DNA from: Vicugna vicugna | Lineage: Eukaryota | Length of the DNA: 64,000 nucleotides | Reading direction: 5' to 3' | Assembly (NCBI GenBank): GCA_013265495.1 | Contig: MU060767.1 | Span: 4,947,546 to 5,011,545 of the forward strand | Shown: positions 9,030 through 64,000 of the stretch, one piece after another | Layout: each line of letters starts with the position of its first letter | Position numbering within the stretch: position 1 is the first letter of the stretch | Made by a program: the position numbers and the translations under genes | The notes under the pieces: generated by a model | Told to the model about the DNA's origin: nothing | What the model saw: the letters and a program-made list of their open reading frames with translations, nothing else | The model's database searches: none

Positions 9030-9190
9030 TTCTGACCAACTGTGTGACACTATGCATGTGATTTAATGCCTTGAAGCTGAGTTGCGCACCTATAAAATGA
9101 AACGGAAATCACTTGCTGGTTATTAGGACTCAACAGCACAGTGCCTAGCCAGAGTGAGTGCCCAATAGATATTTGTATGATTGGATGAGT
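9030..9190 (+). mobile_element. MIR SINE remnant
   Basis: accaactgtgtgac...ctataaaatg...acagtgcctagc...agtgcccaatagatatttg. Confidence 0.6.
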
Positions 9191-25383: not shown

Positions 25384-28300
25384 ATGCTGGGTCATCCTAG
25401 GAGTAAGGAGTGTTGAAGAAAGGGGTGAAGTCTTCCATAGGGGACTGTCCAGGGGACCTCCCCAGGCTGGGGCCTCACGACTGGCTTCCCTGAGGAGGCG
25501 GCTATTTGACTGAGGGGAGGACCGTCTGAAGGAAGAATTGGGAGAGGGCAGCCCTAGGTTGAGGGAACCATATGTGTCCTAAGCAGCTGGAACATGGAGA
25601 CCCTGTTCTGTGACCCAATGGGAAGGAGAATGATACCCTAGTGATATCCAGAGGAATGTTACCAGTGAGGAGAGTGCCATCCCCCAGGTGGTGGACATGT
25701 CAGCTAGATACCCCATCCCGGTGTGGGGACTTGAGGGAACAACGCCATTGCTGCCCACAGACAAAGCCAGCCCAGCTGGGGCGGAGGCTGGGACCACTGC
25801 AGAGGTTACCTTAGCTCCAGCCCTCAGAGTCTCTTAGTTGCCTTCAGAGCTGCCCCAGGATGGCTGGAACAGTCTTCTGCAGGAGGCAGTGAGATCCTCG
25901 TCACTGAAGTTGTACAAACAGAAGCTGGTCAAGGCCTCCCCTGCCCTTCCATGATGAGAGACAGTGTCCAGTGGTTTTGTAGATCCCAGCCAGCCTTCAG
26001 CCAACGTACACACATGACCAGTGTCAGCTCTGGGCCAGGCTCAGTGCCAGAAGGGAGGGAGATGTATGGATGCGATAGGGTGGGTGCCAGTGCCGGTGCA
26101 GGTAGCTCCTGGGGAGGCCTGTGGGCAGGTGCCATAAATGGAGCCAGGGGTCCCAGGAGCCAGAGGACTCCAGGGTCAGATGGAGTTAGAGGGGCCACTC
26201 AGGGAGTGGGTGGCCAGAGTGGAGGTAGCGTCCTTGTGTGGGGCAGACAGGCCCTGAGTAAGAGAGGTCCCCCAGAAGTAGACTGTCATCAGTCGTGTGG
26301 TTTTGAGATGATTCAGCTCAATATCATGGTAATAACATGTAATATGTCACTGTACTGAGGGCTCCTTCCAGGCCCAGCCATTCACTTGCTGTGTGATGTG
26401 GATAGAGCCTCTTATTAGAGTTTTTTGGCGTTGCAGGGGACCTTGATCTGGGCCATCCCATGATGGCTTCCCATAGGAGAGTAGGCCCCAGAAGGGAAGC
26501 TGGGAGAACTAAGTGTGGTCTCTGGGGATTCCCAGGTGGGCTCCAAAGGCCTTTGTCCTTAGATGAGTGAACTTCCCCAGTGGGGGCCGTGTCCATGTGT
26601 GCAGCACCTGCCTGCAGCCCTGCAGAACTTGGGCATGGTGACCTGCACCATCTGGGGGAGGTGAGATCTCATATTCTCCTGTGCCAGGAGCCTCAGTGCC
26701 GCCAGCCTGGAGTGGGCAGCTGGAAAGAAGCTTTGTCCCAGGACCATGGCCTCAAGTGCCCACTGGGCTTGTCAGCACACCTACCACACTCCCAGGTCAC
26801 ATTGCTCAAACCTTGGGCCCTGCTGGGTCACAGAGGGCATCTGGTATCCTTAGGCCTCCCTATCCTGACCCTCTAGCTCTTGCAGTCCACAACCACTATT
26901 TCTGGATTGATGGCAGGGTCTTTCTAGGCTGGGTCTCCAGCCTGCTGTAGTTTCTGGGTCCTGGGCTAGACCTGACTCCTGGGAAAGCCAGCACTGACAC
27001 TGTTCCCCTGAGCCTGAAGGAGCTCACACAAGAAATCTTTGAGGCCCAAAAGGTTCAGGTCACATGGGAAGACCCAACTGGACCTCTGGAGAGGGGCAGG
27101 ATTTTAATGAGGAGTAGGTCAGGGCCTCACTAGCTCTGCTATGGGCTGTATTTCAGTCATCCTGACTGCAGACGGAAAACTGAAGCTTGACAGGTCATGA
27201 GCCTAAGCCATAGCTTGATATCTCTCTTTCCCTTCCACCCAGGCATGGCTCTGCAGGACTCAGATATGACTGAACACAGGTGCAGTTACTAGCAGCTCCT
27301 GCTGGGGGCTGTAGATGGGCAGACTGGCAGGGGTACCTAGTCGTCATGGCCTCCTAACCAGCGTCAGGCCCGGCCCTCAGGGCCAAGGTGAGAACCATGG
27401 AAGCAAGCCATGATGCTCCAGCAGGTGGCGCCAAAGGGCACAGGCAGAGGGATGGGGCTTGGCTAGGGGCTCTGAAGACTTCTTGGAGGAAGTGGCTTTC
27501 TAAACTCTGACCCGAGACTTTTGTGGGCCCAAGCCGAGTCTTGAAGGCACAGAGTGAGTGTGGGCCTCTGGGCAGAGGAATACAAACTGCCCCACTCCCA
27601 CCCCACGAGGGCCTCTTTGTCCTGGCGGGCAGACGCCTGTCCACTCCCCAGCTGTCTTCCTCTGGAGGGAGATGCTGACCAGCTGGAACCTCATTCTCTC
27701 CTATTAAGGCCAAATGAGGGGAGGACTGGTGGAGTGGCTTTCTGGGGGCAGGGAGGCAGCTGCTGAAGCCAGGCAAGGAGAATGAGGATTTCCCTGCCTG
27801 CTGCAGGCCTTTGCCTTGGGAGAAAAGCAGATAGCTGGGCCAGCATCATCTCTGCCATGCTCTGCCTCCTTTCATCCCAGGAAAGGAGATTCTAGCTCTC
27901 ATTGGGCAAGGGAGAAAAATAGGGGCTGCAACCGTAGCAACCTTGTAGTTGACCCAGGGGGAGGGAGGTGCTGAGCCTGGCACGGGATCATCCAAGGCTG
28001 GCCTAGCCTGGGTTAGAAGGAGGCCTCGCAAGGGGCTGGGGAGCTTTACTTGGCTTAGCATTTCCCTTGGTGCTCAGCCAGGACTCCTAGCAGGAGAGTC
28101 TGGGGACAGCCAAGGGGGTGCTACCACCAGCCCCCACATCTGCTGTCAGGGCTAAAAAAGTGAATCATAGCTGGCCTGTTCCACATCACTGGAGGGACAG
28201 CAGCAAAGCCAGACAGTGGAGTCGTCCCACAGGGCTCTCCTCCGAGGCTGGTTGGGACTCTGAGGAGGGCCTAGGCACCTCCCTTGGGCCCTGACCCCAA

Positions 28301-39960: not shown

Positions 39961-42449
39961 ACCACAACCCTTGGAATTCCAATCAGTGGCAACACTGGGG
40001 CAGTCTCTGAGCCCCACACCATTTGCCCCTAGGACAGGGACATGATGGATGAAGATGAGAACAGACCTGTGTTAGAATCCTTTCCTACACCCATCAAATG
40101 TGACCTAAGGTCAGTTACCACTCTGGGATGTATAACTTCCTGTCTTAGATATATAGAGAGATGAACCACCAGGCAAAGCCCAAGTAGGAGTCTGATAAGC
40201 CTCTGCTTCCTAGATTGTTCCCATTCTGATGCTGACTCCATGGTAGACCAGCTAAGGGAGGGGGAGGACCAGTGAGGGAGGAGGCTCTCTGGAGCCTGCC
40301 TCTGTGGTGATCCTGCTGAGCAGAAGCTGCAAAGTGATTCTGCACAACCAGTTTCTCCCATCTCAGCCCTGTCCCCCTCTGCTAAGGCAGAAAACAAAAC
40401 TGGGGGGGGGGGGCGGCGAGCTGCAAGCTTGGCTTTGTGTGACTGGGGACTCACCAGTCAGACCCAACTGAGGAGTCCTTCCTGGGCAAGTCTGGTTGGG
40501 GGAGAGGAAATGAGCACGTGCGTGTGTGTCCATTTGCCTAAGCTCCCTCCCAGAGCAGACAGGCTCTTCACAGGAAAACTGAAACTGCCTCCTACAACTT
40601 TAGCTCTGCAGTTCCAATACAGTCACCCACACCTTGCACACCCTCTTGCTCACCTGCAAACTCAGACACCTGTATACACCTCTAACCTACCTGCAGTGAG
40701 CCATGAACAACAACGGGTCTCTCTCATGAGACCCCTGCCGCTCAGCAGTACACAGACTTGTGCACAAGTCACCCAGCCACTCAACCTAAACCCTGACCCC
40801 AGGGCTGAGCTCCAGGAGTAGCCTTGGCCAGTGGTTCTCAGGGGCATTCTCAGGGAGGGGTGGGGGCAGCTCTGGCAGGCTTAAGACAGTGTTCCTAGCA
40901 GGTGAGGCAGGGCCTGATTACCTACGTGTCTTGCAGTCAAGTGGTGAGAGAGGAAACCTGAGTTTTGGGGCATTGGGAAGCTTGGAGACCTACCCCTGAA
41001 GCTTAGATAAAGTGGGCTGGGCAGTTTTCTCCTCCTCCTCCTGTGGGGCTTTGCAACCACAGCTGGAGGAAGCCCAAGTCACAGAAGGCATCCCTCCTCT
41101 CACTTCACTCTCAGGCTCAAGGTTAGGAGATGTAACAGCAGCAACACAAAGGCCTGAGGTGAGATTTCAGGAAAGACTGCCCTGGACCACTAGTATCTAC
41201 AGATGGCCTGGTTCCTGTTGAGACAGCTCATTAATTAGAAGGCAGGGGAGGAGATGCCCTGTCCCTGGGAGCAGAGCTCACAACCTAGTCCCTGCTTCGT
41301 ACCAGGAGGTCTGTCATCTTTCCTTTCTCAGACTCCTAAAACTGGGGTCCCTTGAAGCTTCTCACTGCACCCTGAACTTAGGTCTCTCCCATCCAGCCTG
41401 AGCCCTGCTCTGTCTCTGCCATCTTTCCCAAAGCCCAAACCTTGATTGCACCCTCACCCTGCCTTAGCACATTCTGGCTACTTGCCTAGCATTCAAGGCC
41501 CCTTCCAAGGAAACAACCTCACATCCCACCACACCCCAGAAGCCAGATTGGTTACTGACTGCCCCCTACCCAGGCCAACCTCATTCTTGCTTCAAGCCTT
41601 TGTCCCACATCTTTCATCTGATCTAAAACATCTTCCACACTCCACCTGTCTCTGCTTATCCTCTGAGGCCCAGCTCAAGGATGGCCTCCTCTGGGAAGTT
41701 CTCCCAGCTCCATCTGATCATGCAGGGCCTCAGTCTACTGGACTGAGATTTCTAAGAAGCCAGTCTGGTGCCCCCAGCCCAGGCCCAGTGCAAGGGGCCA
41801 AAGCACCTGTCCAAAGGCATAGGGGTTAGAGGAGAGACTATACTGCCCCTTCCCAATACAATGGAGCCAGTGCCCCCTAATCTTTCTCCCTTTCCCCACT
41901 TCTGGCTGGGCCTCAGCTCCCCCTTCCCTCCTTCTGCTGACAGATTTATTCCTTGCTCCAGACAAAGGGAGCTCAGTCAGGCAGGCAGAGGTACCTGAGT
42001 TCAACTCTCTAAGACCTCGGCACAGAGGACCAGGAGGGATGGTCCTAGGTGCAGACTCTGGACAGCTACTTCAGCAGTTCAACGGTTGGGGGTGGGATCT
42101 GAGAGGCAGCTTAATGTCCAGCTGTCCCTCATGATGATTTCAAGCTTTTCTGGACTCCAAGGAGCCCAGCCAGTTAGGGGGAAGGAGTCCCAACTCTCCA
42201 TCGAAGCCTCTTCCTCCCATCCCAGGGAAGAGGAGAAGGGACCTCCCACGTGGGGATGTTAGGAAGACTTCAAGGAGTGATCATCCTCTAAAAGTCCCTC
42301 AGAGCAGTATTCCCTGTCCAAAGACTGCTCTCTTGGAGAGGGGCATAGCATAAACCCCAGGAGGCTCCTACTTTCTCAGCCACCAGTTTCCCCTGCGCAC
42401 CCGCCCACTCTCTACCTCATTTTCCTCTAACACCCTTGAAGCCTCAGGT

Positions 42450-44703: not shown

Positions 44704-46219
44704 CTTTGGAAACTCAGGGTAACGCTGATTTTCCAAAACCTGCTGATTGCTGTTGTCCCAAATCTGTGGCTCAGTCTCAGAAGTGGACACAGTACCCTTG
44801 ACCTGGCTTCCTGATCTAAGCTGTAGAACCTGGATAGGTGGGTCCCCCCTAGCTCTAGTCATCCTACTGAGAGTCTGGCTGTGGTTTCTCCAGCTTCATC
44901 CATTAAGGGCTTCCTTTTGTAACTGTGGAGGGGATGCAGAAGGGGTGGTGAGGTGGGGATCCCAGACAGCCTTCAATTTGGTCAAGGCCACACAGGTATA
45001 CCAGCAATTGTCAGAGCAGGAGTCCAAGTGTAGGGAGGTGGAAGTGGGAAAGTAGGGTGAAAACAGAGTCTGGGAAACAGGATCTTACACTGTCCTGGGA
45101 AGGAAACATGAAGGATCCTGACTCACTGGGAAGCCCAAGATGGGGAGAGAGTCTTGCTGAGAGGGGTTGTAGGGAATGAGTGGGGGAATATAGGATGGCT
45201 AGGATGGGCATGGGGTGTTTCCAGTGGGACTGGATGATCTGCCACAGTTTTATTTAACACCCCCTATGGCCTGAAATTCATCCAACTTCCTAGGCCAGGA
45301 GGCTAGGAGGCCAGGCCTCCTTCCCAGGATCTATGCTCTAGCCTCCTGTAGCCTCCTCAGCAGCTGACCCCTTGCTTCTCATCAGGTGGAGACATTCTGG
45401 AAGTAGAAAGGAGGTGGTTCAGGCAGTCATGGCTGGGAGGGGCTGGCCCAGCCCTGTCTGAGGCCTGGTGCCAGGTTGTGCCTGCCCAAGGGCAGAGAAC
45501 CAGCCTCTGCCAGAACCAGAAGTCTGGGCTGGCAGGGGCCTCCAGAGAAAAGAAGGGAGGGGGGCAGAGGGTAGGAGCCCCAGCAGATAAGACAGGGCCT
45601 CGCAGGGGTAGAGGAATGAAGGGCAACCAGAAGGAGCAGAACCCCTGAACCACCCCACCCCGAAGCCCAAAGCCCATAGTCTCCTTTAGTCCTTAGTCCT
45701 GCTCCCTCAACCCCCTTAGTCAGGAACCTAGGGAGTCAAACCTTTAGCATGCCCCAGGCTCTGGGAGGCCATGGGGTGCGTGGGGTCTGGCAGGCCGACT
45801 CTTCTGCTCCATCTGAGTCCAGCAGCTCACTGGCACCATCTGCTGGCCTTTGGGGAGGGCATGGCTCTGAAGGGGATAAAGTGAAGGTAACAGCTGGATT
45901 TGATGATGCTGGGAACAGAAATAGGGGTATTGGGGAGAGAGTTGCCAAGTAGCACTCTCCAAAAGTTCATGCTCTGTTCCCTGACCACATTGGGGTTTCT
46001 TGAGCCAAACACTCTCTTATCACTTCTTCCTTTCTCTGTGGTCAGGCTCAGAAGCAGCAGAGGCCCAAGGAGGCCCTGGCCTGCACTCTGCTCACCCCTG
46101 GCACCCCGACCATCCCTCCCTCCTGGCACAATGGCAGAAGGGAACCTCTTCCTGACAATGACCAGTACCTCCACCCCAAGTTCCAGACCCCATCCTTCCC
46201 CATCCTCAAAGACAACAAG

Positions 46220-47460
46220 ATTTTATTGAGTTCCTACTGCATGCCAGGCCCTGTGCTGGGCACCTTGGATATAATAACTAAACATTGGCTCCTTCCCAGC
46301 AGCATTCACAACAGCTCTGGCCTCTCCTTCTGGTAATCATAATAAAGAACTTCTCCTACCTCAATCCTATATCTCTTTCCTCAAGCATTGTTCTCATGTT
46401 CTCCCCCGCCCCCATTCTCAGCCACATTTCTCTAAAACTGTCAGCAGTCACCATCTCTACTCTCTTCTCCACAACTCCAGCTCTGAGTTTGTTCCCACTC
46501 CCGACCACACCAAAGATTACCAGTGAATGACATCCTAGTCCCTGAATACCATGGACACATCTTTGCTTTCAGTTAACATGGCTTCCTGGATGTCTCTGAA
46601 CTTCTGGCTATTCCTCACTACCCTACGCCCTTTCTCCCTTTGTGTCTGCAAAGCCACTGCTGCTGGATTTCTTCCTACCTCTCTGGCTCTTCCTCTCTGC
46701 CTCTTTCGTGAGCTTCTGTTCCTTGTGGGTGAACCTCTGACTGTGGAGGCCTCATGCTCAGTCTCTCCCTCACCATGACCTCATTTTTCTCCTCACATGC
46801 TGGTGACTCCCACACTATTTTCCAGCCAAGCCTTGCTCTTAACTCCAAGCCCATGTGTCCAGCTGCCCCTGGATGCCTCTCTGGGACACCCATAGGCCCC
46901 TTACACTTGGCATGTCCAAAGATGGTTCTCATCATCTTCCCTAGTTCTGGCAGCCACCCCTTCCCCACCTCATCCTCAATCTTTATTCCACGCACTGGCC
47001 TCCAAGCCTCTTGCTCTGTCCCAAGCCCTGGGTTGTTTATAGAGGACTTACAATAGCCTTTTGTAGTAGGTACCATCATTACTATTTTATATTCAAGGAA
47101 ACTGAGGCTTCCAGAGGCTAAGAAAATTGTTCAAGGTCTCAGACTCAGGTGTACCAGAGCCCAAAATCTGGGCTCTTGAGAACTGTGTTAATGTAGCGCT
47201 ATGTTTGCCACATGTGGCCTCTTAGACTTCATTCTGAGGGCAAAGAAGAGCTGGTAATGGTCTTGAACAAATAAGACCCCTGTCTGGTTTGGGGATGGGA
47301 GAAGAGGGGAGGCTGGGAGTCCTGTTGGAGCATCCACATGAGGGACAAAAGCAGAGGTCTGTTTTGTATAAACTGAGCCCAGAGTGCTTGTGGACATGCG
47401 AGGGCTGAGCCCAGAGGCAGCTGAGTGCCTGTGGTCTCCAGCACATCACTCATGTGACAC
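46220..47460. mobile_element. L2 fragments with a MIR (~47060-47175)
   Basis: ttttattgagttcctactgcatgccaggccctgtgctggg (L2 tail); CT-rich L2 body; ggaaactgaggcttccagagg (MIR). Confidence 0.6.
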
Positions 47461-48050: not shown

Positions 48051-50176
48051 GCACTGTCCCCTGGCCTTCAGCCTAGGAGGTTGGCAATACCTAGGCAAAG
48101 GACTATCAATCTTTTAAAATTTGCTTCTGGATTAGAATTAAGGCAAGTTGTTAAAACCAATACCAAAACTTGCTTCCTTACAGCTTCAGTCACCCCGATT
48201 CAGACCTTTTCTTCGCAGAACAACTGCCAAGAAAAGATACAAAATTTAGTTGCTGTTGGCTGACTGATTTAATTTATTTGCATATACATAATTCAGCCCC
48301 ACCCCTAGTGGCTAATACACCCCCTGGGGAAGCTGTGGCTGCTTTCTGATTGCTGGTGGGGAGGCCTGTGTGTGTTGTTTTTTTAAATAAACTGAAACCA
48401 GATGGAGGAGGGGTGGGGGTTGTTCCCTGCCTTGCCTACAATTTTCTCCAGCGAATTCCTTGAAAAGCCAACCACCTATGAGTGGTGCCTATTCTCCTTG
48501 GAGGTCCCTCACCGCTGGTATGCAAATAGAGAGTGGAGCTGGGATTTCTAAAAATGAAAACAAAAAGAGGAGAAAGCAGCGTCTTGGCAAAAGGGCTTTT
48601 GGAAACAAGGGGTCATCTCCCGGTAGAGCCCCGGTTTTAAGTCTCCACTTACAGTTTGTGTCCTCACTCTCCTTCCTTCTCCCTTGAATTGGAGATTGAG
48701 CTGGGCTTGAGTCAGAATCACCTGGACCAACCACTTGGTGAAAATATGGATTCCAGACATCCTCCTACCCCGCAGGCCCCTTGCAGTGCTAACTGCTGGC
48801 GTGAGACCCCAGCTCTCAGGATGGGTTGATTTTTGAGTCAGTGGAGAGGGTTCTCCCCTGGAAGGGGCCCAAGTGCTCTTGCTTTCATCCTGGGAAGACC
48901 AGTTTCTCAAGGTGGTTATAGAAATATTTTTAACCGCCAGCCAGGTCTAAGGCTTTGTAATGCCCCTCAAGCACCTCATCAAGAGATTCCTTGTTCAGAG
49001 AGATAAGCAAGTATACTACCCACCGGTCACAGTGCCAGGAGGTTAACATATTTCTTTGGTGCGTGAATTAAGCACTGTCATGGTGAAGCATGACCTAGTC
49101 CCCAGGCAGGGGAGAACACTTCTTTCCCAGTTCCGACCTTCATTCCTAGCTCAGAACTCTGTTCTTTTGGATTACAAGGCTTTTTAGATAATTGTGTCAG
49201 GTTACACAAGCTTTTGCGATATGAACACTCAAAGGAAATTCCTCTGGGAGCAGGCATGAAAGGTTCCAGCGTATAATTTGCTTTAAAGTATTCAAGGAAA
49301 AATTCAGGTGCCTCAGCCCTGTACAATTCCTGAAATAAAGTAGGAACAGCCAACAACTTTGCATGCATGTACTATTCCCCATAGAAATGAGCAAGCAAAA
49401 AGATTTCATGCTGAATAGAAATACCCCTCCCCCAGGGATCATGTGCAAGGCTAGGTGGAGGCCAGTTGCAAAGAGGGTGGCTTTGACCAGGCTGCCATGA
49501 AAATCCTTACCAGCGCAGGGTACCTTGTCATCCCCTTTCTGCATCTTAGGTAACACATGTGGTAAATACAAGCCTTCGGTTTTCCAAGAAACATAAAATA
49601 AAAACTGTATTACTGGCAGAGAAGCTTTAAAATCTTTGGTTCCTAGGACACTGAGGGTGCATTTTCCACACACCATGATTTTTATTTCATTTGCCTCTGA
49701 GGGATGGCCCAGAACCAGCTCTGTTGCATAAGGTACTGTTTCCGAGCACCTTGTCCCCAACTGGAGACACAAAATAAGTTTTATCTAGGTCTGAGAGAGT
49801 TCTGAAAGGGTGACATCGTGTTCCAAGCTGCTCTGATTATAGTCAACAGTGAAAGCTGCCAGAGTCTTCTCACCAACAAAGCTGAGATAATATTCTAAAT
49901 ACCGAACTTTACGCTTTCTTAAAGCACAAAGTAGTCATAAAAGATGTTTAACAAGGAAAAGTTAATGGGAGGAAAATGTCTTAAATGTAGCAAATAAAAA
50001 CAATCTTTACAAGTGACATGGGAAAAATAGATTTACTATTATGAAGGGATAATAATGTAGGAAAGTCAATTTTTACACCAAAAATAATTCAACAAGTATT
50101 ATTTACTTTACAAAAGGCTTCACAAAAGAATTCCTATTAAATAGTTTGATACTTTCATTTGTTTGTCCCATTCTTT

Positions 50177-50900
50177 ATTCATTCAACAAACATCTGTTGA
50201 ATGATTACTGTGTTCCAGGCTCTGTGCTTAGGGAAGTGGTGGTGAGCTAAATAAATATTCCTCCCCTTGTGGTCTCTCCATCTGGCTGGAGAACAGCCCC
50301 TAATCAGATCACTATATAATTAGGAAGCCACTACTGATAGAAGGAACTAGAAAGCAGAGCCTCACAGTGCTGTGGGAGTGATGACTTCTATTCTGAGGGT
50401 CAGAAAAAGCTTTCCCGGAGGAAGTGATGTTTCAGGTAGCAACAGCATCACGTGCAATGGTCCCTAGTTTATGAGGGAGCCTAGTCCTTTGAGGAAAAGG
50501 AGGCTATCAGGCTGTAGAGATCAGATGGAGCCAGGGGACAAAGGAGGTCTTGGAGGCTACAGTGAGGAGAAGGTTTTGATTCTAATTTCATAGTATATCA
50601 AAATACCAGTCCCTGAGGAGCAGGGAGAGTCACTGAAGGTTGTAGCAGGAAGTAAAATAATGTTTGACTTTTTTTTTTTCATTTTAAAGAGAGTCTCGAG
50701 CTGTGGGGATAATAGGCTGATGGGAGTGGGGAGCCCACAGTAGAAGCAGAAAGACCAGTCAGGAGTCTGCTGCATTTGCCAGAACAAGAGATGCTGCTGG
50801 CCATGGGGACAAGCCAAGTGGATGGGCTGAATCATCCAGGGCCCACTGGAAATGGTACTGTGACCCAGACTAAATGGACTCAGAGAGCAAGAGCTGTGGC
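50177..50900 (-). mobile_element. L2 LINE 3' fragment
   Basis: attcattcaacaaacatctgttgaatgattactgtgttccaggc; aaagctttcccggaggaagtgatgttt. Confidence 0.8.
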
Positions 50901-53172: not shown

Positions 53173-54139
53173 TTAAGTCACTTGCATAGGACTTATAATT
53201 GGCATGTGATAGAGCAGGAGTTTCTCTGTTGCTTTTGTTGTATGGTTGTGGCTGATACCTTTTAGAGATAGGGATGTTTTCTGTCCAGCCCATTCTGAGC
53301 AGGTAGCCAGCCAACTTCTCACATTTTCAGGGCCTTAGATATATGGATAGGTCAGCTGGTAGAAGACAAAGCTTATTCTTGTTTTGGGGGAAGGGCTGAG
53401 CTCATGGGAGGGTCCATCCTGAGTGTTCCCAAGAAGAAGCAGAGAGGGGGCTTTCAGGGAAGCCAGGTCCAGCAGGGAGGTCCCCCAGGCAGGGAAAGGG
53501 AAGACACTCCACACACCCTGGAACAGAGGAAGCAGGTGCCTGTTTCCTGGCAGCCCTGGAGCAGCAGGCATGGCCCCACAAAGGCCAAATATAAGAGTAC
53601 CATGGATGGGACAATGGTTGTGGCCTCAGTACCAGAGAGGGCCCATGACCAGAGAGTGCTTCTCAAACTGTCTACTATTGCAGGAGATCCTGAGCCCTGG
53701 GAATAACCTGGGTAAAGAGGAGCCTAGTGGAGACCAAGACTGAATTTTTCACCAGCCTGGAAGATGGGAGCTCCCAGTAGGATTTATGCTATATTTAAAG
53801 GAAATAAAGAAAGGAAATATTTTGTGTTCTTACAGTTCACACTTTAAATTATAGGGCACCTGAATATTTATTTGTATATTTATTTGTCTAGATCTGCCTT
53901 CCCCTTAGCCTGTAATCTCCCTGAAGGGCAGGGATTTCGTGGGTGTTCCCCATGGTACGTCCAGTGCCCAGCACATACTCATTTAAGTGTGTGGGCTAAC
54001 TGGGGGTCTACCTGAGAGCGGTGGGCTCATTAGAGAAACTGGAGCACGTCTGGGACAAATTAGTATTTCCAGAAGACAAGCTGTGCATTGAGGGTGGGGG
54101 AAGTGGGTTTTCTAGGAGAAAGGTTGGAAAGAAACGTGA

Positions 54140-54570
54140 ACCTGTCGGCCTAGGGCTGAGGGGGCCCTTGGCGAGCCCCGCCCGGAGCCGGGGTGCCAGC
54201 GCGACGTGACGCAGCGCGGTTTGGCCGCTGTGGGGCGCCGTAGCCCGCGTCGTTGCCAGGGGAACGGGCCCAGCGCCGGACGAGGCCCAGCCCGCCTCGG
54301 CCTGGCCCCGCGATACAGCCAGCCGGCTCCAGCCGGAGCTGGAGAACTTGCGAGTCCAACCTCTGCCGCGCGGCCCGGTATGGGTCCGCGCTCCAGGGCA
54401 CGCCTCCACCCTGTCCCAGGGACCGTCTCCGCTGCGAGGGTCTGAAGAGCCTCCGTCCTGGGGAAGGGTGGACGGCCAGGCGCGGTGACTGAACCGCTGA
54501 GTGACCTTGGCAGGGCCTATCTGGCTCCACCGCCACGACGCGCAGGTGAGGAGCCCCCGCCGCAGTTCTC
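54140..54570 (+). promoter_or_regulatory. ZDHHC1: CpG-island promoter and non-coding first exon of ZDHHC1
   Basis: Dense CpG; GC box gccccgccc 54175-54183; TGACG 54207-54211; X-box-like 54252-54265; candidate donors CCG|GTATGG (54377) and CAG|GTGAGG (54545); upstream of the ZDHHC1 coding exons. Confidence 0.75.
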
Positions 54571-54659: not shown

Positions 54660-55200
54660 GCATTCATCAGGCGCACAGACCTGCATTGAGCGCCTACTGT
54701 GTGCTAGGCTGTTTGCCAGGCGCAGGGCCACAGAGAGCCACGGAGGGCTCCAAAGAGGACGCGGCTGGTTTCCAGAACCCACAGTGTAAAGAGAGGCGGG
54801 GCAGGGGTTGGGGTGCGGGAAGCAGGCGCCAGATGGATGACTAAAGTGCTTTCGGGCTGGGTTAAATGCTCTCGTGATGAAATGGAGGGAGGTGGTCAGG
54901 GAGAGTCTGCTCTAACATGTGACTTTTAAGCCAAGACCTGAAGGTTGAAAAGGAGCCAGCATTGTGATCAGGGTAAGGGTCATTCTTGAAGAGACAAAAG
55001 CAAATACAAAGGTCTGGAGGCAGCAGGTACAGGGGAGCAGAAAGGATGAGGGGAACCTTGAAGGAGGTGGTGGGGGTTTCAACTTTATCCTAGCAGCAGG
55101 AGGAAACCACTGAGGAGTTTTGATGACTTTGAAGTTTTGAAAAGCTCACCTCACTCTGGCTGTTGTGAGCAGTGTGGTTGTGACAGGGCACACCAGGAAG
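54660..55200 (-). mobile_element. L2 LINE fragment
   Basis: cattcatc...cattgagcgcctactgtgtgctaggc; aagccaagacctgaagg; ttttgaaaagctcacc. Confidence 0.7.
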
Positions 55201-56839
55201 TCAGCTGAGGGCCATCCTAGTTCTGCCAGTTTAGCTGTGCCTCTTACAACTTAGTCTCTCTGAGCCTCAGTGTTCTCATCTGTGAAAGGGGCATATTGTT
55301 CTGTATGTTGTTTATGAGAAAGAAAATGAGGGGCCAACCACATCCGAGACCAATGACTAGAGAGTTCTATGAGAACAATTTGAAATGATAGGACCTACTC
55401 AGAGAATTGTAAGGGTTTAATAAGTGAATTTCATCTAAGTATTTAAAGCAATGCCTGGCACAGAATAAGTGCCCTTTAAATGCTAATGATGGTCATTATT
55501 ATTGAAACATTGTAGGGGAGCAAAGATTGGGGCTTGGATTAAGATGATGGCAGCAGAGACAGTAAGAAGTTTCTGGCTTAATTTCCCTTCTTGAAGGAGA
55601 GCTGTATTCAGAGGTGGGTGAGGGGTGGTCCCTGTTTTTGTGGAACTGGTGGTTCACTGTGGGAGACAGGTTTGTAAACAGATAATCACCATAAGATGCG
55701 ATAAAAGCAACACTGGTACTTAATTAGCCAGAGTTTTTTTTCTTTTGTTTTTCTTACTTTATTCTGTCACAACTTTGTTCTTAATGACTGTTTCTTGGTG
55801 GGTGTTCCTCAAGGCTTGCTCCTTTGATCATGGGAGTTGGTTTCCTGGTTAAAATCAACAACTTTTGCCTCTACTCATTGGCTTTGTTTCAGCTCCCTCC
55901 TCTTGTCTTCTTTCCTTGGCTTAACTTGAATCCTAAACAGTTTGCATTGGTTGCTTCAGGAGGAGAATGGCACAGAAAATGTTTGCAGACCATGTCAATT
56001 CAGGAATGACTGAGGTTTCAAGCTTTTCCTGCCCTAGCATCAGACTTCTGCATGTTGTTGATATGAAGAATCCAGCCACATCTGTGACCAACAACTTGGA
56101 GAGGTTTATGAGAATGGCTTGAAGCTCCAATTTATTTTCTGGGAATTGTGATGGGCATCTCTTAGTCAAACTGTAGCCACTCCCCAGAATTTTAAGGCCA
56201 GCAACTTCTCTGGCACTTGTGGGGAATTCTGATAAAGTACTTGCTCCTTAAAAGTTCTTTTATAAATGACGTTTTACGGTGTAAAACATATGCACCATGC
56301 AGCATTTTGTTTCCACACCCCCTTTATGTGGCTAAATAAGGCATATGTTAAATCAGTGAAAATGGGTTTAAAAGCAGATCCTGGGGAAAAAACGGAAAAC
56401 TTGTTTCAAAATACCTGTAGAATCACTCATACAGCAACCATAAATCTTCTAGCAAAAAGAAAAGATGGTTGAGAGTGAAACCTTCCTTCCCTTTGGGTTC
56501 TGGAGTCACAAGAGCTGAGCTGAACTTCAGCTGAGGACTGGAACAAGGTCCTGCCCAGCGGCTCCTGTGTTGTGCTGCCTGGTTGTCTGATTCCAGCTTT
56601 GATGAAACCCTCAATAGCTCATAGGGAGCTCTTCAGCTGAACAACTCAGAATTGCTTTTGAGAGTGAGAAAGCATTGAACTAAAACTGAGTGCTCTTTTG
56701 TTGCATGGTAGGATTTCTTTGTCTGGCACAGTACAGGGCTCTGGATCATATGAGCACATTTGGTCCACATGGCAGCCCAGTGGGTCAAGGAGGATAAGAG
56801 ATGACATCCTCAATTATTTATTTGACCTAGTTTTTTTTT

Positions 56840-59224: not shown

Positions 59225-61075
59225 ACCTGGGATCTAACCCTGTAGCTCCCCGGGGCTCATCTCTTTCTTCCTGGACCTTGCTCTCTAACCCCAAAACCAT
59301 CTACCCTGTGTTCTGTCACAGGGCCTTGCAAGGCTGCTTAAATACCCATTCATCCACTGCCCTGATATCTGTCTAGGTCTGTCTGGGTCCCCACATAGCA
59401 AGACCTTGAGGGCAGGAACCTGGTCTCATCTGTGTTTGCATCTTTAGTGCACACAGGGGGCTAGGCCCCATAAGCACTGACTGGGCCAAGGTGAGTACAC
59501 AAGCTGGCTGAGTTGTCTGGGAGCAGAACCATGCATCTTTCAATCTAGTCTCCTAGGGAAGTGCTGAGAGAAGAGGGGCAGCCAGAGAAGTTCCATCTAT
59601 GCTTGAGGCCCCATCTTGAATTCTCTCCTTCCTCCCAGCCCTTTTAATAAAAAATCTGGGGGCCAAAAGAATTTGTGGCAGCCAACTCTGCAATGGAAAA
59701 TTTATCAGTTAAGAGTTGATTGGCCCAGGCTTTTGGTGCAGGTGGCATGCCTCCTGGCCAGCTTGGCTATCTAGTCTGGAGTGCTGCCGCTGCTGCAAGG
59801 GACCTAGACCCAGTGGCACCATCCCTTCATCCACGGTTCATACAAGTGGTACGTCTCTGGGCCAAGGGTGCTGTGGTTTGGAATCAGAACCACCCTTCAG
59901 GCTGTTTGTGGTAGGCCCCTGGCCTTAGATGGCAACTCCTCTTGCCTCAGATATCAGGGTTAGTGCAGCAGCACTGGGGGTGCCTGTGGCCACTGCCCGC
60001 CCATTCCAGCAGCAGGGACATGTCAGCCATGTGCCTCTGCTTCTTTCTTTAGAAACTACCTCAAGGTGCAGGGTTATTCAGGCGTGAGGATGGCAAAAAT
60101 AAAACTAGAACTTAGGGATCCCAATTAATGGGTTCCCTTCGAAGGAATTGCCTTGTTGATGGTGTCACTGAAGAATCTGTGTGCAAATCACAGGCAGTTC
60201 TGAACAGAACCACCCAGCTCCGTATTCACAGAGCTTGACTTGATGACCTTTGTTTCTAAAAGCAAGAACAAAGATTTGCTGCTTCTGGGGACATTCAAAA
60301 TAAAGTGATGCCAGATTTTTAAAAATCACTTTTGTCATTTTTGACCAAAGCTGAGAAGGTTAGGATGACAATCCAGTGGCCCAGCTCTTATGACAGTGTG
60401 TTCCTTGGGACTACTGACTAAGAAAGCAACTTCAACCAACCCCATCACTTTGGGTATAAACCTCATAAAATCTCATAGAATGTCAGACGCAGTAACCGCC
60501 TCAGTTTGAAAAGATGAGGCCACCCCAGAGGGCTATTTTAAGGGTAATCATAATGTCTACCACTTAGAAAGCATTTGTGTCAAGGCTTTACCTACAGTGC
60601 TGTTGATCAATGCGTAGTCCTAAATAGGCATCCCTACCTGTTTTTCAGATGAAACTCAGGCCACTCAGCGAGCAAGTACAGAACTAGGACTTGAACCTAG
60701 ATCTGATTTCTCCAAAGCTGGGACTCTTTTCACTTTCCACTGCTTTTTACTGAAGACAAAGCAAATGACCAAAGGATTCCAGGGGAGTCCCTGGGAAAAA
60801 ACTAGGGTCACTCCATTTAGCTTTGAGATTAGGCTACAGATACGCCAGGTTTGGTTTACAAGAGGCTCTGAGTCTCGGGTGGGATGAAGGGCAGAGTGGC
60901 TGAATGCGAATGTCTGGCAGTGAGGGTAATAGCCAGTGGGCAGGGGGATCTGGGGATGGTGGGTATGGGTGCTTGGTGGCTGTGCAGACTGAAGGCAGGG
61001 CAAAATGGGTCAGAAGGCTTTGGGTGGATCAGGATTCCATACCATTTACTGTGCCCACATTTCCTTTTATTTCAG

Positions 61076-61122
61076 ATGTTTTCAAGTCAGCAGACATTTA
61101 CTGAGCACCTACTATGTACAAG
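61076..61122 (+). CDS. ZDHHC1: ZDHHC1 exon 2 (47 nt; 38 nt UTR + ATG TAC AAG at 61114-61122)
   Basis: ttccttttatttcag|ATG...ATGTACAAG|gtatgt; supplies MYK, which precedes MNICN in recalled human ZDHHC1; phase 0 join. Confidence 0.85.
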
Positions 61123-61400
61123 GTATGTTCTGGGTACTTGGGGGAGGGAATATGGGGAACAGAGGTGAATGAATTACAGTACCTTTGCTGCCCTTAGGGG
61201 AAGCTGGCACAATAGGAGGAAAGACATGGAGATGGCAAAGTGTTCCAAATGGCAAAGTGACTTGCTCAATAAAGACTGAGCACAAAGGCCCCCTGACCTA
61301 CTTGGGGCATCAGGGAAGGCTTCCTGGATGAGGTGATGCTTGCTTGGATTCTGAAGTTCAAGTTACATTTTGTTGAGTTGAGAAGTGAGGAAGGTGTTCC
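61085..61400 (-). mobile_element. L2 3' fragment overlapping ZDHHC1 exon 2
   Basis: cagacatttactgagcacctactatgtacaaggtatgttctgggtacttgggga and catcagggaaggcttcctggatgaggtgatg match the antisense L2 terminus. Confidence 0.8.
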
Positions 61401-62483
61401 AGGAAGATGTGCTGAGGGGAGTCTGCCATACCTCTTGTCTTAGACTCCCTAGCCCATAGGCATGGGCTCCTGAAAGGAGAGTCCAGCTGCCAGGGCTTTG
61501 CCCCTGCTCCTGACTTTCCCATCAAGAGCTTCAAGTTGGCCTCTCTACCCAGGTAGGGCACGCCTGCCCAAGCTCTGGTCCCACCTCAGGCCCGGAAGAT
61601 ACCAAGGATTGGGCTCTTTTTCCTGTTCTGATAGGCCCACCCTGCCTGCCCTGCATGTAACTTTGACCACCAGGTCAGCTCTTGGGCTGAGGATGGTGAG
61701 ATGGGGGTGGAGTAGTGCTGCCATCTGGTGTTTTGGCTCTGGCCAAGGCAGGTCTTTCCCTGAGCTCCCTCAGTTGAGTCCAAGGCATCAGTGCACCTTT
61801 CTGTTCTTACTGCACCAGGCTCAGCTTTACTTAGAGAAACATGGTCATTTCTGCTGCTGGAATCACAGAGTCCTCCCCCTTCTCTTGTATGCTGGCTTCT
61901 CCCCAGCCAAGAGGCCCAGGCAGCTCATCTGAGGCACAGGGGAGATGGTTCAGGGTCCCCTAGTCCTTAAAGGGATTATGTGCTTGCTGAAGGGCAGAGG
62001 CCAGATCCCTCTTCTGAGCACCCCCCATTCCCTGTTTTCCTTGCATTGGGGCCTCAGGACAGAGGTGACTAATCCTAACAGAATCAGTGTGTGTTCTCAT
62101 CACTCTGGCCCCAGCCTGATATTATTACCAGATGAGAACATGTCTTACTGAGTTTAACTTTGATGGCTGTGGAGACAGAGCGCTTTGAGTAATAGGCAGT
62201 CACACTGTGTCCTGAATAAACCCTAGACCCTCCTACCTTGTCCTGGCTAGGGCTAGGGCCAGAGCTTACTCTGGGGCTTTGAGACCAGCACTCTGCTGCT
62301 ATCCATCCTCACTGCAGGCTTCCTCATGCTAGGGCCTTGGATTCCCCTGCAGAGTAGCTGGGAGATGGCTTCACATCCCAGTCTGCTCCCCCCTTGCTGA
62401 AACCTGGCTGTAGGCATGAGGCTCTGGGCTCCAGCCCAGGCCTCCTCAGGCTAATGCTCTCTCTACTCTTTCTCCCTCTGGAG

Positions 62484-62726
62484 ATGAACATCTGCAACAA
62501 GCCCTCCAACAAGACAGCTCCCGAGAAGAGTGTGTGGACAGGATCTGCGCAGGCCAGCAGACCCTCTCCAGAGCTGCAGGGCCAACGGTCCCGCCGGAAT
62601 GGGTGGAGCTGGCCCCCTCACCCGCTCCAGATTGTGGCCTGGCTGCTGTACCTCTTCTTTGCTGTGATTGGCTTTGGGGTCCTCGTTCCCCTCCTGCCTC
62701 ACCACTGGGTGCCTGCTGGCTATGCT
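62484..62726 (+). CDS. ZDHHC1: Palmitoyltransferase ZDHHC1 exon 3 (243 nt); the gene continues beyond the window
   Basis: ctctggag|ATG (uncommon GAG acceptor)...GCT|gtatcctt; MNICNKPSNKTAPEKSVWT...RSRRNGWSWPPHPLQIVAWLLYLFFAVIGFGVLVPLLPHHWVPAGYA. Confidence 0.96.
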
Positions 62727-64000
62727 GTATCCTTGGGAAAGTGTGGGACTGGTACATGGAAGAGTGGGGGCAAAGGATGGAGGGACATGGGAGAGATCTG
62801 AAGCTGGGCTCCAAAGACTCAAGAGTGCAGAGCCCTGTCTCTGCCCTGGGTGGGGGGTGGGGGGACCACCTGCCTACCTGCCTGGCCTCCAACTTCCATC
62901 TGATCCATCTGCCTGATGGGGTGAGGGAACAGACCTAACAAACCTTGGAGCATTGAAAGCCCCCACACAGATGGGAACCTCATCAACTTAGGTACCACAA
63001 GAGCAATTACAGAAGAGAACTTTAAAGTTCTCTTTAAACTAATAGTGTACATTGCTCAACAAGGGATAAAATAGAGTAATTGGTCCATTTATGAAATAGT
63101 TTTTCACTTTTTGAAAATAATCATGGTAGAATTCCTTTACATAGTAAGTTTGCTGGTACATTTAAAATGTGATTTTATTTAGAGAGGTTATTATGCTGTA
63201 CCCAAGACTGTTTAGGAGCTCATTGGTTTTATAAATCAGACCCTTTAAGGGTAAGGTTGAATTGACAAGAGGAGGGATAAAGATGCCCTGAAGGTTCCTG
63301 GGAACAGTGACAAATATGAACATGCCTGAGCCCACTGGTATGACTGCCCCAGCCCTGGCCATAACCCCCAGGAACAGAGGACATGGCTGCAAGGCTGGGA
63401 GATTGGGGTATAGCATGTGGCCATGTGCCCCTGTCCAGAGGGTGCCCATGAGAATGTACCCTGGCATGTATGCTTCATGGAGATGATTCCTTGGACTAGG
63501 GTGAGCTAAGGGAATTAGCATGGATGAATTTGAAAGACTCAGGCATAGAGCCAGCTCCTGAGCTTGGTCCCAACTCAGCCTTTTCAGGGCTGCACAAGGC
63601 TGAGCAGCTTCTCCCAGCTTACCACACGTCAGCCCCCTCCTCTGTCTGACAGGAAGAGTCCTACCTGCTTCCCAAGGTGGGGACAAGGAGCACACAAGGA
63701 AGTGTGTGTGAGCACCAGAATATATGAGCCATGAATGTGAGCATGCTCTCTTGGGAAACTGTAAAGCCCTGAGCTGGTGGGTGACAAAGGTAGGTGGGTA
63801 GAGAAAGACTCTAGAGAAGGTTGTCGGCCTCAGACACCAGCAATGTCATTGGGGGATGTCCTGTTTCACTAGGGCCCAGGGCCTAGTCATCAACTCTGTA
63901 AATTAAAACTAGAGTTTCTTTGAGGTGACCAACAGGGCTTAGTCAGTGCTATTAAGTAGAATGCTTCATGGAACATTCCTTCCATGGTCCTGAATGGGGA

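Follow-up and report, generated by a model that had tools for sequence, protein, structure and literature searches.

An antisense L2 3′ end as the probable source of the 47-nt leader exon carrying the first in-frame ATG of ZDHHC1 in Vicugna vicugna

Transposable elements have contributed 1824 exons to a human catalogue in which the MIR and L2 classes are included (PMC2231382), and the exonisation of Alu elements has been documented as well (PMC3629564). A literature search for ZDHHC1 together with exonization returned no paper naming ZDHHC1 in that context, and a full-text search for the consensus strings described below returned unrelated primer sequences only. The locus reported here was studied in a 64,000-nt stretch of Vicugna vicugna DNA (contig MU060767.1, assembly GCA_013265495.1), referred to as the window. 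Like the catalogued MIR and L2 exons, exon 2 of its ZDHHC1 gene appears to be an intronic ancient repeat that supplied splice sites and became an internal exon shared among orders; unlike them, it belongs to the 5′ leader and provides the mRNA with its first in-frame ATG.

The gene was identified by an exhaustive HMMER search with an 81-codon exon, which gave 251 relatives, the named ones all being palmitoyltransferase ZDHHC1; the exon was 94–98% identical to the named mammalian ZDHHC1 models. The elements of the gene that are relevant here are the following:

54270 to 54545 (5′ end approximate), + strand: ZDHHC1 exon 1, non-coding 5′ leader, from the bat cDNA alignment
61060 to 61075, + strand: exon 2 acceptor, pyrimidine tract and AG, tttccttttatttcag, from the sequence, with cDNA junctions directly after it
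61076 to 61122, + strand: ZDHHC1 exon 2, 47 nt, the same 47-nt exon being present in bat and cricetid cDNAs
61114 to 61116, + strand: annotated in-frame start codon (MYK), context cctactATGt, from 71 listed mammalian models with N-terminal MYKMNIC
61123 to 61128, + strand: exon 2 splice donor gtatgt, from the sequence
62484 to 62726, + strand: ZDHHC1 exon 3, 81 codons, with the ancestral start MNICNKPSNK, 98% identical to mammalian ZDHHC1 N-termini

Exon 1 is followed by the donor gtgagg at 54546. The acceptor context of exon 2, ttccttttatttcag (ending in tttatttcag), directly precedes the first exon base at 61076, and the exon then runs from ATGTTTTCAAG to CCTACTATGTACAAG, where gtatgt begins; the string catttactgagcacctactATGTACAAGgtatgt was found at 61095–61128 on the + strand. 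The last nine bases of the exon (61114–61122) are ATG TAC AAG, coding for Met-Tyr-Lys. Exon 3, about 1.36 kb further on and flanked by the acceptor ctctggag and the donor gtatcc, opens with ATG AAC ATC in its reading frame and encodes MNICNKPSNKTAPEK. The junction of 61122 to 62484 is in phase 0 and gives MYK-MNIC, the MNIC ATG lying after splicing 9 nt 3′ of the ATG at 61114 in the same frame. The nine bases at the donor 3′ of exon 3 (62727–62735, gtatccttg) resemble the U12-type 5′ splice-site consensus.

Transcript evidence was taken from Logan contigs of other mammals, one from a bat (L001) and ten from cricetids (L002–L011; nearest named model, Phodopus). The bat contig is a 1.87-kb cDNA whose product is 98% identical to a Myotis lucifugus model. 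It showed, in order, a GC-rich leader ending in gacgcgcag, the segment from ATGTTCTCAAG to TTCCTATGTACAAG, and ATGAACATC. Its nt 1–294 mapped to 54270–54545 of the window with the switch to exon 2 exactly after gacgcgcag, the next 47 nt mapped to 61076–61122, and the remainder from 62484 onward. These alignment blocks define exon 1 at about 54270–54545, an exon 2 that is the one given in the preliminary description, and an exon 3 that holds MNIC. Exon 2 is present in all ten cricetid contigs, joined at its 3′ end in the same way. Identity of the window exon was 42/47 to the bat cDNA and 40/47 to the cricetid cDNAs. The exon that ends before the gtatgt donor, as originally described from the sequence, is thus present with the same boundaries in transcripts of both groups, and from its intact splice sites exon 2 should also be included in Vicugna transcripts.

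Two further observations concern the neighbourhood of this exon. In the cricetid contigs a different exon of about 64 nt, from cctgtcatcctggccctgaggagg to ccagctatggctacata, lies directly 5′ of exon 2 in the cDNA; we take it to resemble a B1/Alu-type SINE, and it is possibly a second repeat-derived leader exon. In addition, the first 46 residues of a mammalian fragment, P0002, mapped to 61648–61779 with 70% identity and are joined in the fragment straight to MNIC, so that an alternative exon within intron 2 may be used in some species; the window site matching the donor of the P0002 exon reads cag|ttgagt, without GT.

Among the matches listed for the human N-terminus, 71 of 117 clusters start with MYKMNIC. 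Human ZDHHC1 models do so, as stated in the preliminary description, together with models from apes, lemurs, murid, sciurid and castorid rodents, deer, bovids, whales, bats, bears, mustelids, equids, pangolin and the golden mole Chrysochloris, so that MYK is found in at least nine placental orders among the models listed. A Jaculus model extends further upstream through the same exon (QADIHSASTMYK). MYK was also sought in non-mammalian orthologs, among them those of birds, for which a start at MNIC had been expected: the eight full-length models begin at the equivalent methionine (MNIC, MDIC or MSIC), and they include hummingbird, guineafowl, caecilian, frog, coelacanth, sturgeon and characin. 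Since MYK is distributed across placental orders and non-mammals start at MNIC, the exonisation should predate the placental radiation. A turtle fragment (P0014, Chrysemys picta) begins with LYKFL directly before MNIC; its YK was rejected as a counterpart of MYK and regarded as a coincidence, the C-terminus of the fragment running through the exon 3 donor into the intron, and the fragment is probably an unspliced model.

The start codon has been kept less faithfully than the exon. In the cricetid cDNAs GTA replaces the MYK codon ATG and ATA the first ATG of the exon, and the called protein begins at MNIC. Pig and Rhinopithecus models have VYK in place of MYK, and the models of warthog, Mus, Arvicanthis, cricetids, Aotus, Cebus, Ictidomys, Heterocephalus and Rhynchocyon start at MNIC. 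Variants were also seen after the initial methionine (MSK in panda, MHK in goat, MGTK in heteromyids). The proposal of an origin before the human–artiodactyl split is in agreement with the occurrence of MYK across placental orders, and retention holds for the exon; the ATG itself was lost in several lineages. Given these absences, the MYK start codon is not essential to the gene, and the three extra residues seem to be dispensable.

Conservation of the exon sequence was assessed with L014, a 6.8-kb orthologous genomic contig whose exon 3 peptide does not differ from bear, mustelid and horse models and which is the sole deep genomic comparison. Window and contig, which represent two orders, were identical at 45/47 positions of exon 2, with values of 70% and 76% for its 200-nt flanks, 75% for the 3.5-kb alignment and 93% for exon 3; the acceptor of exon 2 is almost unchanged. 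Four intronic 47-nt blocks (62129–62175, 62359–62405, 62957–63003 and 63255–63301) were 91–96% identical to L014 against the 75% background, and these are possibly regulatory elements, or exons that lack annotation.

The leader contains two upstream reading frames. In exon 1 a uORF of 21 codons (54380–54445) has its ATG in the context cccggtATGg and ends in TGA, and in the bat cDNA both an ATG and a TGA stand at the equivalent positions. In exon 2 the first base, 61076, begins an out-of-frame ATG which, with the exon joined to 62484–62487, opens a 16-codon uORF (MFSSQQTFTEHLLCTR) that runs across the MYK ATG and is closed by a TGA overlapping the MNIC ATG (AAG|ATGA). The ATG at 61076 is kept in the bat cDNA and in L014 and is ATA in the cricetid cDNAs. 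The MYK ATG, with A at position −3, is the first in-frame ATG of the spliced mRNA, and under the scanning model ribosomes that reach it should use it.

These features bear on the strongest alternative, according to which exon 2 is in practice a 5′-leader exon, the working start is the ancestral MNIC ATG, and MYK is a by-product of annotation convention, with the corollary that something other than the tripeptide maintains the conservation of the exon. This reading is plausible, if the less probable of the two. It is consistent with the cricetid transcripts, which keep exon 2 although the ATG became GTA, with the absence of the ATG in several unrelated lineages and the variability of residue 2, with the MNIC start of all the non-mammalian models, and with the 16-codon uORF that crosses the MYK ATG and ends over the MNIC ATG. 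The A at −3 and the first in-frame position of the MYK ATG, for which use by scanning ribosomes is expected, argue against it, as does the preservation of this ATG in most of the placental orders sampled. In the reading adopted here the tripeptide would be translated. The conservation of exon 2 may nevertheless reflect a leader function rather than the tripeptide. A stronger form of this idea, that the exon is under purifying selection as a translational control module and not for MYK, is rather doubtful; ribosomes would then be divided between initiation at MYK and termination followed by reinitiation at MNIC, and the repeat would have installed both a choice of start site and a dosage control on a palmitoyltransferase.

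The preliminary description had assigned the exon to the terminus of an antisense L2 element. The repeat features found at the locus, and the two copies elsewhere in the window that served as references, are:

61082 to 61139, − strand: MIR/L2-type 3′ tail, antisense to the gene, from a six-copy profile with the locus left out
61303 to 61354, − strand: second repeat segment, read as L2 3′ UTR body, from a four-copy profile, E 6e-4 to 7e-4
50183 to 50500, − strand: reference L2-like copy with ttcattca tail, tail motif and second segment, from profile matches
53652 to 54005, + strand: reference L2-like copy, element sense on the window + strand, tail at about 53962–54005 and internal segment at 53905–53934

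The tail profile was built from six copies (46213–46261, 50183–50233, 54674–54722, 9134–9177, 184–233 and 55443–55487) on the window with 61000–61400 masked. With the locus thus excluded from training, the profile scored 61088–61134 at 21.9 bits (E 8e-6). In leave-one-out runs the locus reached 25.6 bits (E 4e-7), compared with 9–22 bits for the true members and about 9 bits for the best unrelated site; the orthologous site in L014 gave E 2.7e-6. The alignment takes in the greater part of exon 2 together with the ATG, the donor and 12–17 nt of intron 2. The exon lies inside the repeat, is bounded by AG and GT sites and is internal in both the bat and the cricetid cDNA contigs. The copies, which were weak matches in nhmmer with the locus as query, share the pattern ACAAACATTTATTGAGCAC.TACT.TGTGC.AGGC.CTGTGCT.

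As the seeds had been picked by similarity to the locus, and 2 of 100 shuffled queries reached the real score when the whole seed-picking procedure was repeated on them, this circular route taken alone corresponds to p ~0.02. The 34-mer given in the preliminary description as the L2 terminus was used as an independent seed. Applied alone to the masked window it recovered the same dispersed copies, and it agreed with the six-copy consensus at 31/34 positions; the tail family is therefore a genuine one whose definition does not depend on the locus. When the 34-mer was used as nhmmer query, its best match in the whole window was the site at 61096–61128 (E 0.0019; 29 matches, 4 mismatches, 1 gap). 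The independently seeded route makes the repeat-tail match solid, and a MIR/L2-type tail over the exon, antisense to the gene as originally proposed, was recovered with E 4e-7 to 8e-6 for the locus-excluded profile. Blastn of 61000–61400 against the window gave no paralogous copies, pattern searches with up to three mismatches within the window gave no further ones, and Rfam, which holds no such model, gave sub-threshold noise only; repeat copies this old need profile methods. A tail of the same type and orientation as the exonised one (54674–54722) lies only about 130 nt 3′ of the exon 1 donor; with GTG in place of the ATG and GC in place of the donor GT, it provides a natural un-exonised comparison.

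MIR and L2 elements have a 3′ tail of about 50 nt in common, and the assignment to one or the other is therefore decided by the body of the repeat. A second-segment profile was seeded with 27463–27580, 25467–25591, 41595–41717 and 50392–50500, which are only weakly alike (leave-one-out E 0.2–3.7). Its match at 61303–61354 was far above any other site, and the real score was higher than in any of the 100 shuffle controls, for which the complete procedure was repeated. The distance from tail to second segment is 215 nt at the locus and 209 nt in the copy with its tail at 50183–50233 and its second segment at 50392–50500, where strand and order are the same. Both profiles also matched L014, in the same colinear arrangement as at the locus. 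The extension of the repeat into the intron, which had been claimed at the outset, is seen both in the tail alignment, to about 61139, and in this colinear segment.

The copy with its tail at 53962–54005, the clearest of the L2-like ones, is the reciprocal best match of the locus (E 0.08–0.36); it has a weak second-segment match at 53652–53697, colinear with the 54005 tail, and a short internal L2 probe matched it at 53905–53934. This probe gave no match at the exon 2 locus, nor did a downstream L2 profile made from three copies, and local alignment of 61140–61260 with 53830–53960 was no better than for shuffled sequences (p 0.16), the L014 orthologue behaving likewise. A MIR-like profile, which with three sequences only is a weak test, matched the locus over the tail alone (hmm 9–62, E 0.015) and recruited no further copies; the MIR core region in this profile of three sequences found no match beside the tail. 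The motif ctgggYac after the tail is common to the locus and two L2-like copies and is absent from the MIR-like ones. L2 elements end at the 3′ terminus in a microsatellite of the (TGAA)n type, which appears as ttca repeats on the opposite strand; 61066–61090 reads tttatttcagatgttttcaagtcag and is only loosely ttca-like, and the 50183 copy has a clear ttcattca at 50170–50185.

On the colinearity observed within the window, the region from 61080 to at least 61354 is very probably one antisense L2 3′ end rather than a MIR, and the support for an L2-specific body at 61303–61354 may be called moderate. That the exon came instead from the tail of a MIR-type SINE, 61303–61354 being an unrelated neighbouring repeat, is unlikely. 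Such an origin would fit the restriction of the significant tail-profile match to 61082–61139, which is common to both families, the MIR-like sequence downstream of 3/6 training copies, and the non-significant L2-specific similarity across 61140–61260. Against it stand the MIR-like profile itself, which matched the tail and nothing over the body, the ctgggYac motif, and the second segment, which surpassed its 100 controls and has the distance, order and strand found in a copy with a ttcattca terminus. A chance resemblance to a repeat tail, with an exon 2 not derived from a repeat at all, could appeal to the 2 of 100 shuffles that reached the real score with query-similarity seeds and to the lack of other copies in the blastn and three-mismatch searches, but is highly improbable given the independently seeded model (E ~1e-6 at the locus, above every left-out true member), the orthologous L014 site at E 2.7e-6 and the colinear second segment.

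The antisense L2 tail could then be compared base by base with its six other copies in the window. The T of the donor GT (61124) is C in five of the six, in register, and the donor would for this reason have arisen by C>T; the change most likely turned GGC into GGT and gave AAG|GTATGT, as in the earlier suggestion that an L2 'gc' had become the GT donor. The parallel suggestion that an L2 'atg' became the initiator stands as regards position, the ATG being inside the repeat tail, and is less clear as regards origin. Where the start codon begins, the six copies have G, G, G, C, C and C, A occurring in none of them, and the 34-mer given for the L2 terminus has A there; the ATG accordingly came either from the element or by G>A, and a later G>A transition rather than the element's own ATG may have been responsible. 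The acceptor falls 6–10 nt beyond the stretch aligned to the profile, close to where the L2 terminus is expected, and would derive from this terminus; a source in the ttca-type microsatellite is only a guess.

A history of the exon may be proposed from these comparisons, in which an antisense L2 3′ end in intron 1 probably became the 47-nt leader exon with the first in-frame ATG. The L2, or its 3′ end, would have been inserted in antisense orientation between the non-coding exon 1 and the exon with the original MNIC start, before the placental orders diverged. On the strand of the gene, an L2 tail would offer a T-rich stretch and an AG at its terminus and, about 47 nt past this AG, would carry CCAGGCAC. 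The C>T change from GGC to GGT would then yield the strong donor AAG|GTATGT, and the intervening 47 nt would be spliced into the 5′ leader. Because the new exon was upstream of the coding sequence, its length was irrelevant to the reading frame, and fixation was possible without cost. The terminal ATG TAC AAG would join ATG AAC ATC in phase 0, and the annotated protein would gain Met-Tyr-Lys; with this in-phase junction, the first in-frame ATG of the mRNA would be repeat-derived.

The locus would thus be an example of an ancient LINE-2 tail turned into a constitutive 5′ exon that provides a conserved enzyme gene with its annotated initiator, with a single C>T as the likely donor-making step. 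The annotated N-terminus MYK of ZDHHC1 appears as a placental addition that was lost again in several lineages, and this history matters for the comparison of ZDHHC1 models across species and for the design of N-terminal tags and antibodies. As an instance of repeat exonisation ZDHHC1 exon 2 is clean but ordinary, and it leaves the knowledge of that process unchanged. With the antisense Alu exonisations it has in common an antisense element, a pyrimidine-rich acceptor stretch near the end of the element and a splice-site point mutation. Alu exons are confined to primates, are for the most part alternative and are often harmful, whereas ZDHHC1 exon 2 occurs across the placentals, is flanked by strong splice sites and exceeds its introns in conservation. 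As in repeat-derived N-terminal extensions, an upstream in-frame ATG in repeat sequence lengthens the annotated protein; in contrast to them, the addition here amounts to three residues only, without a recognisable signal, and has been lost repeatedly without loss of the exon.
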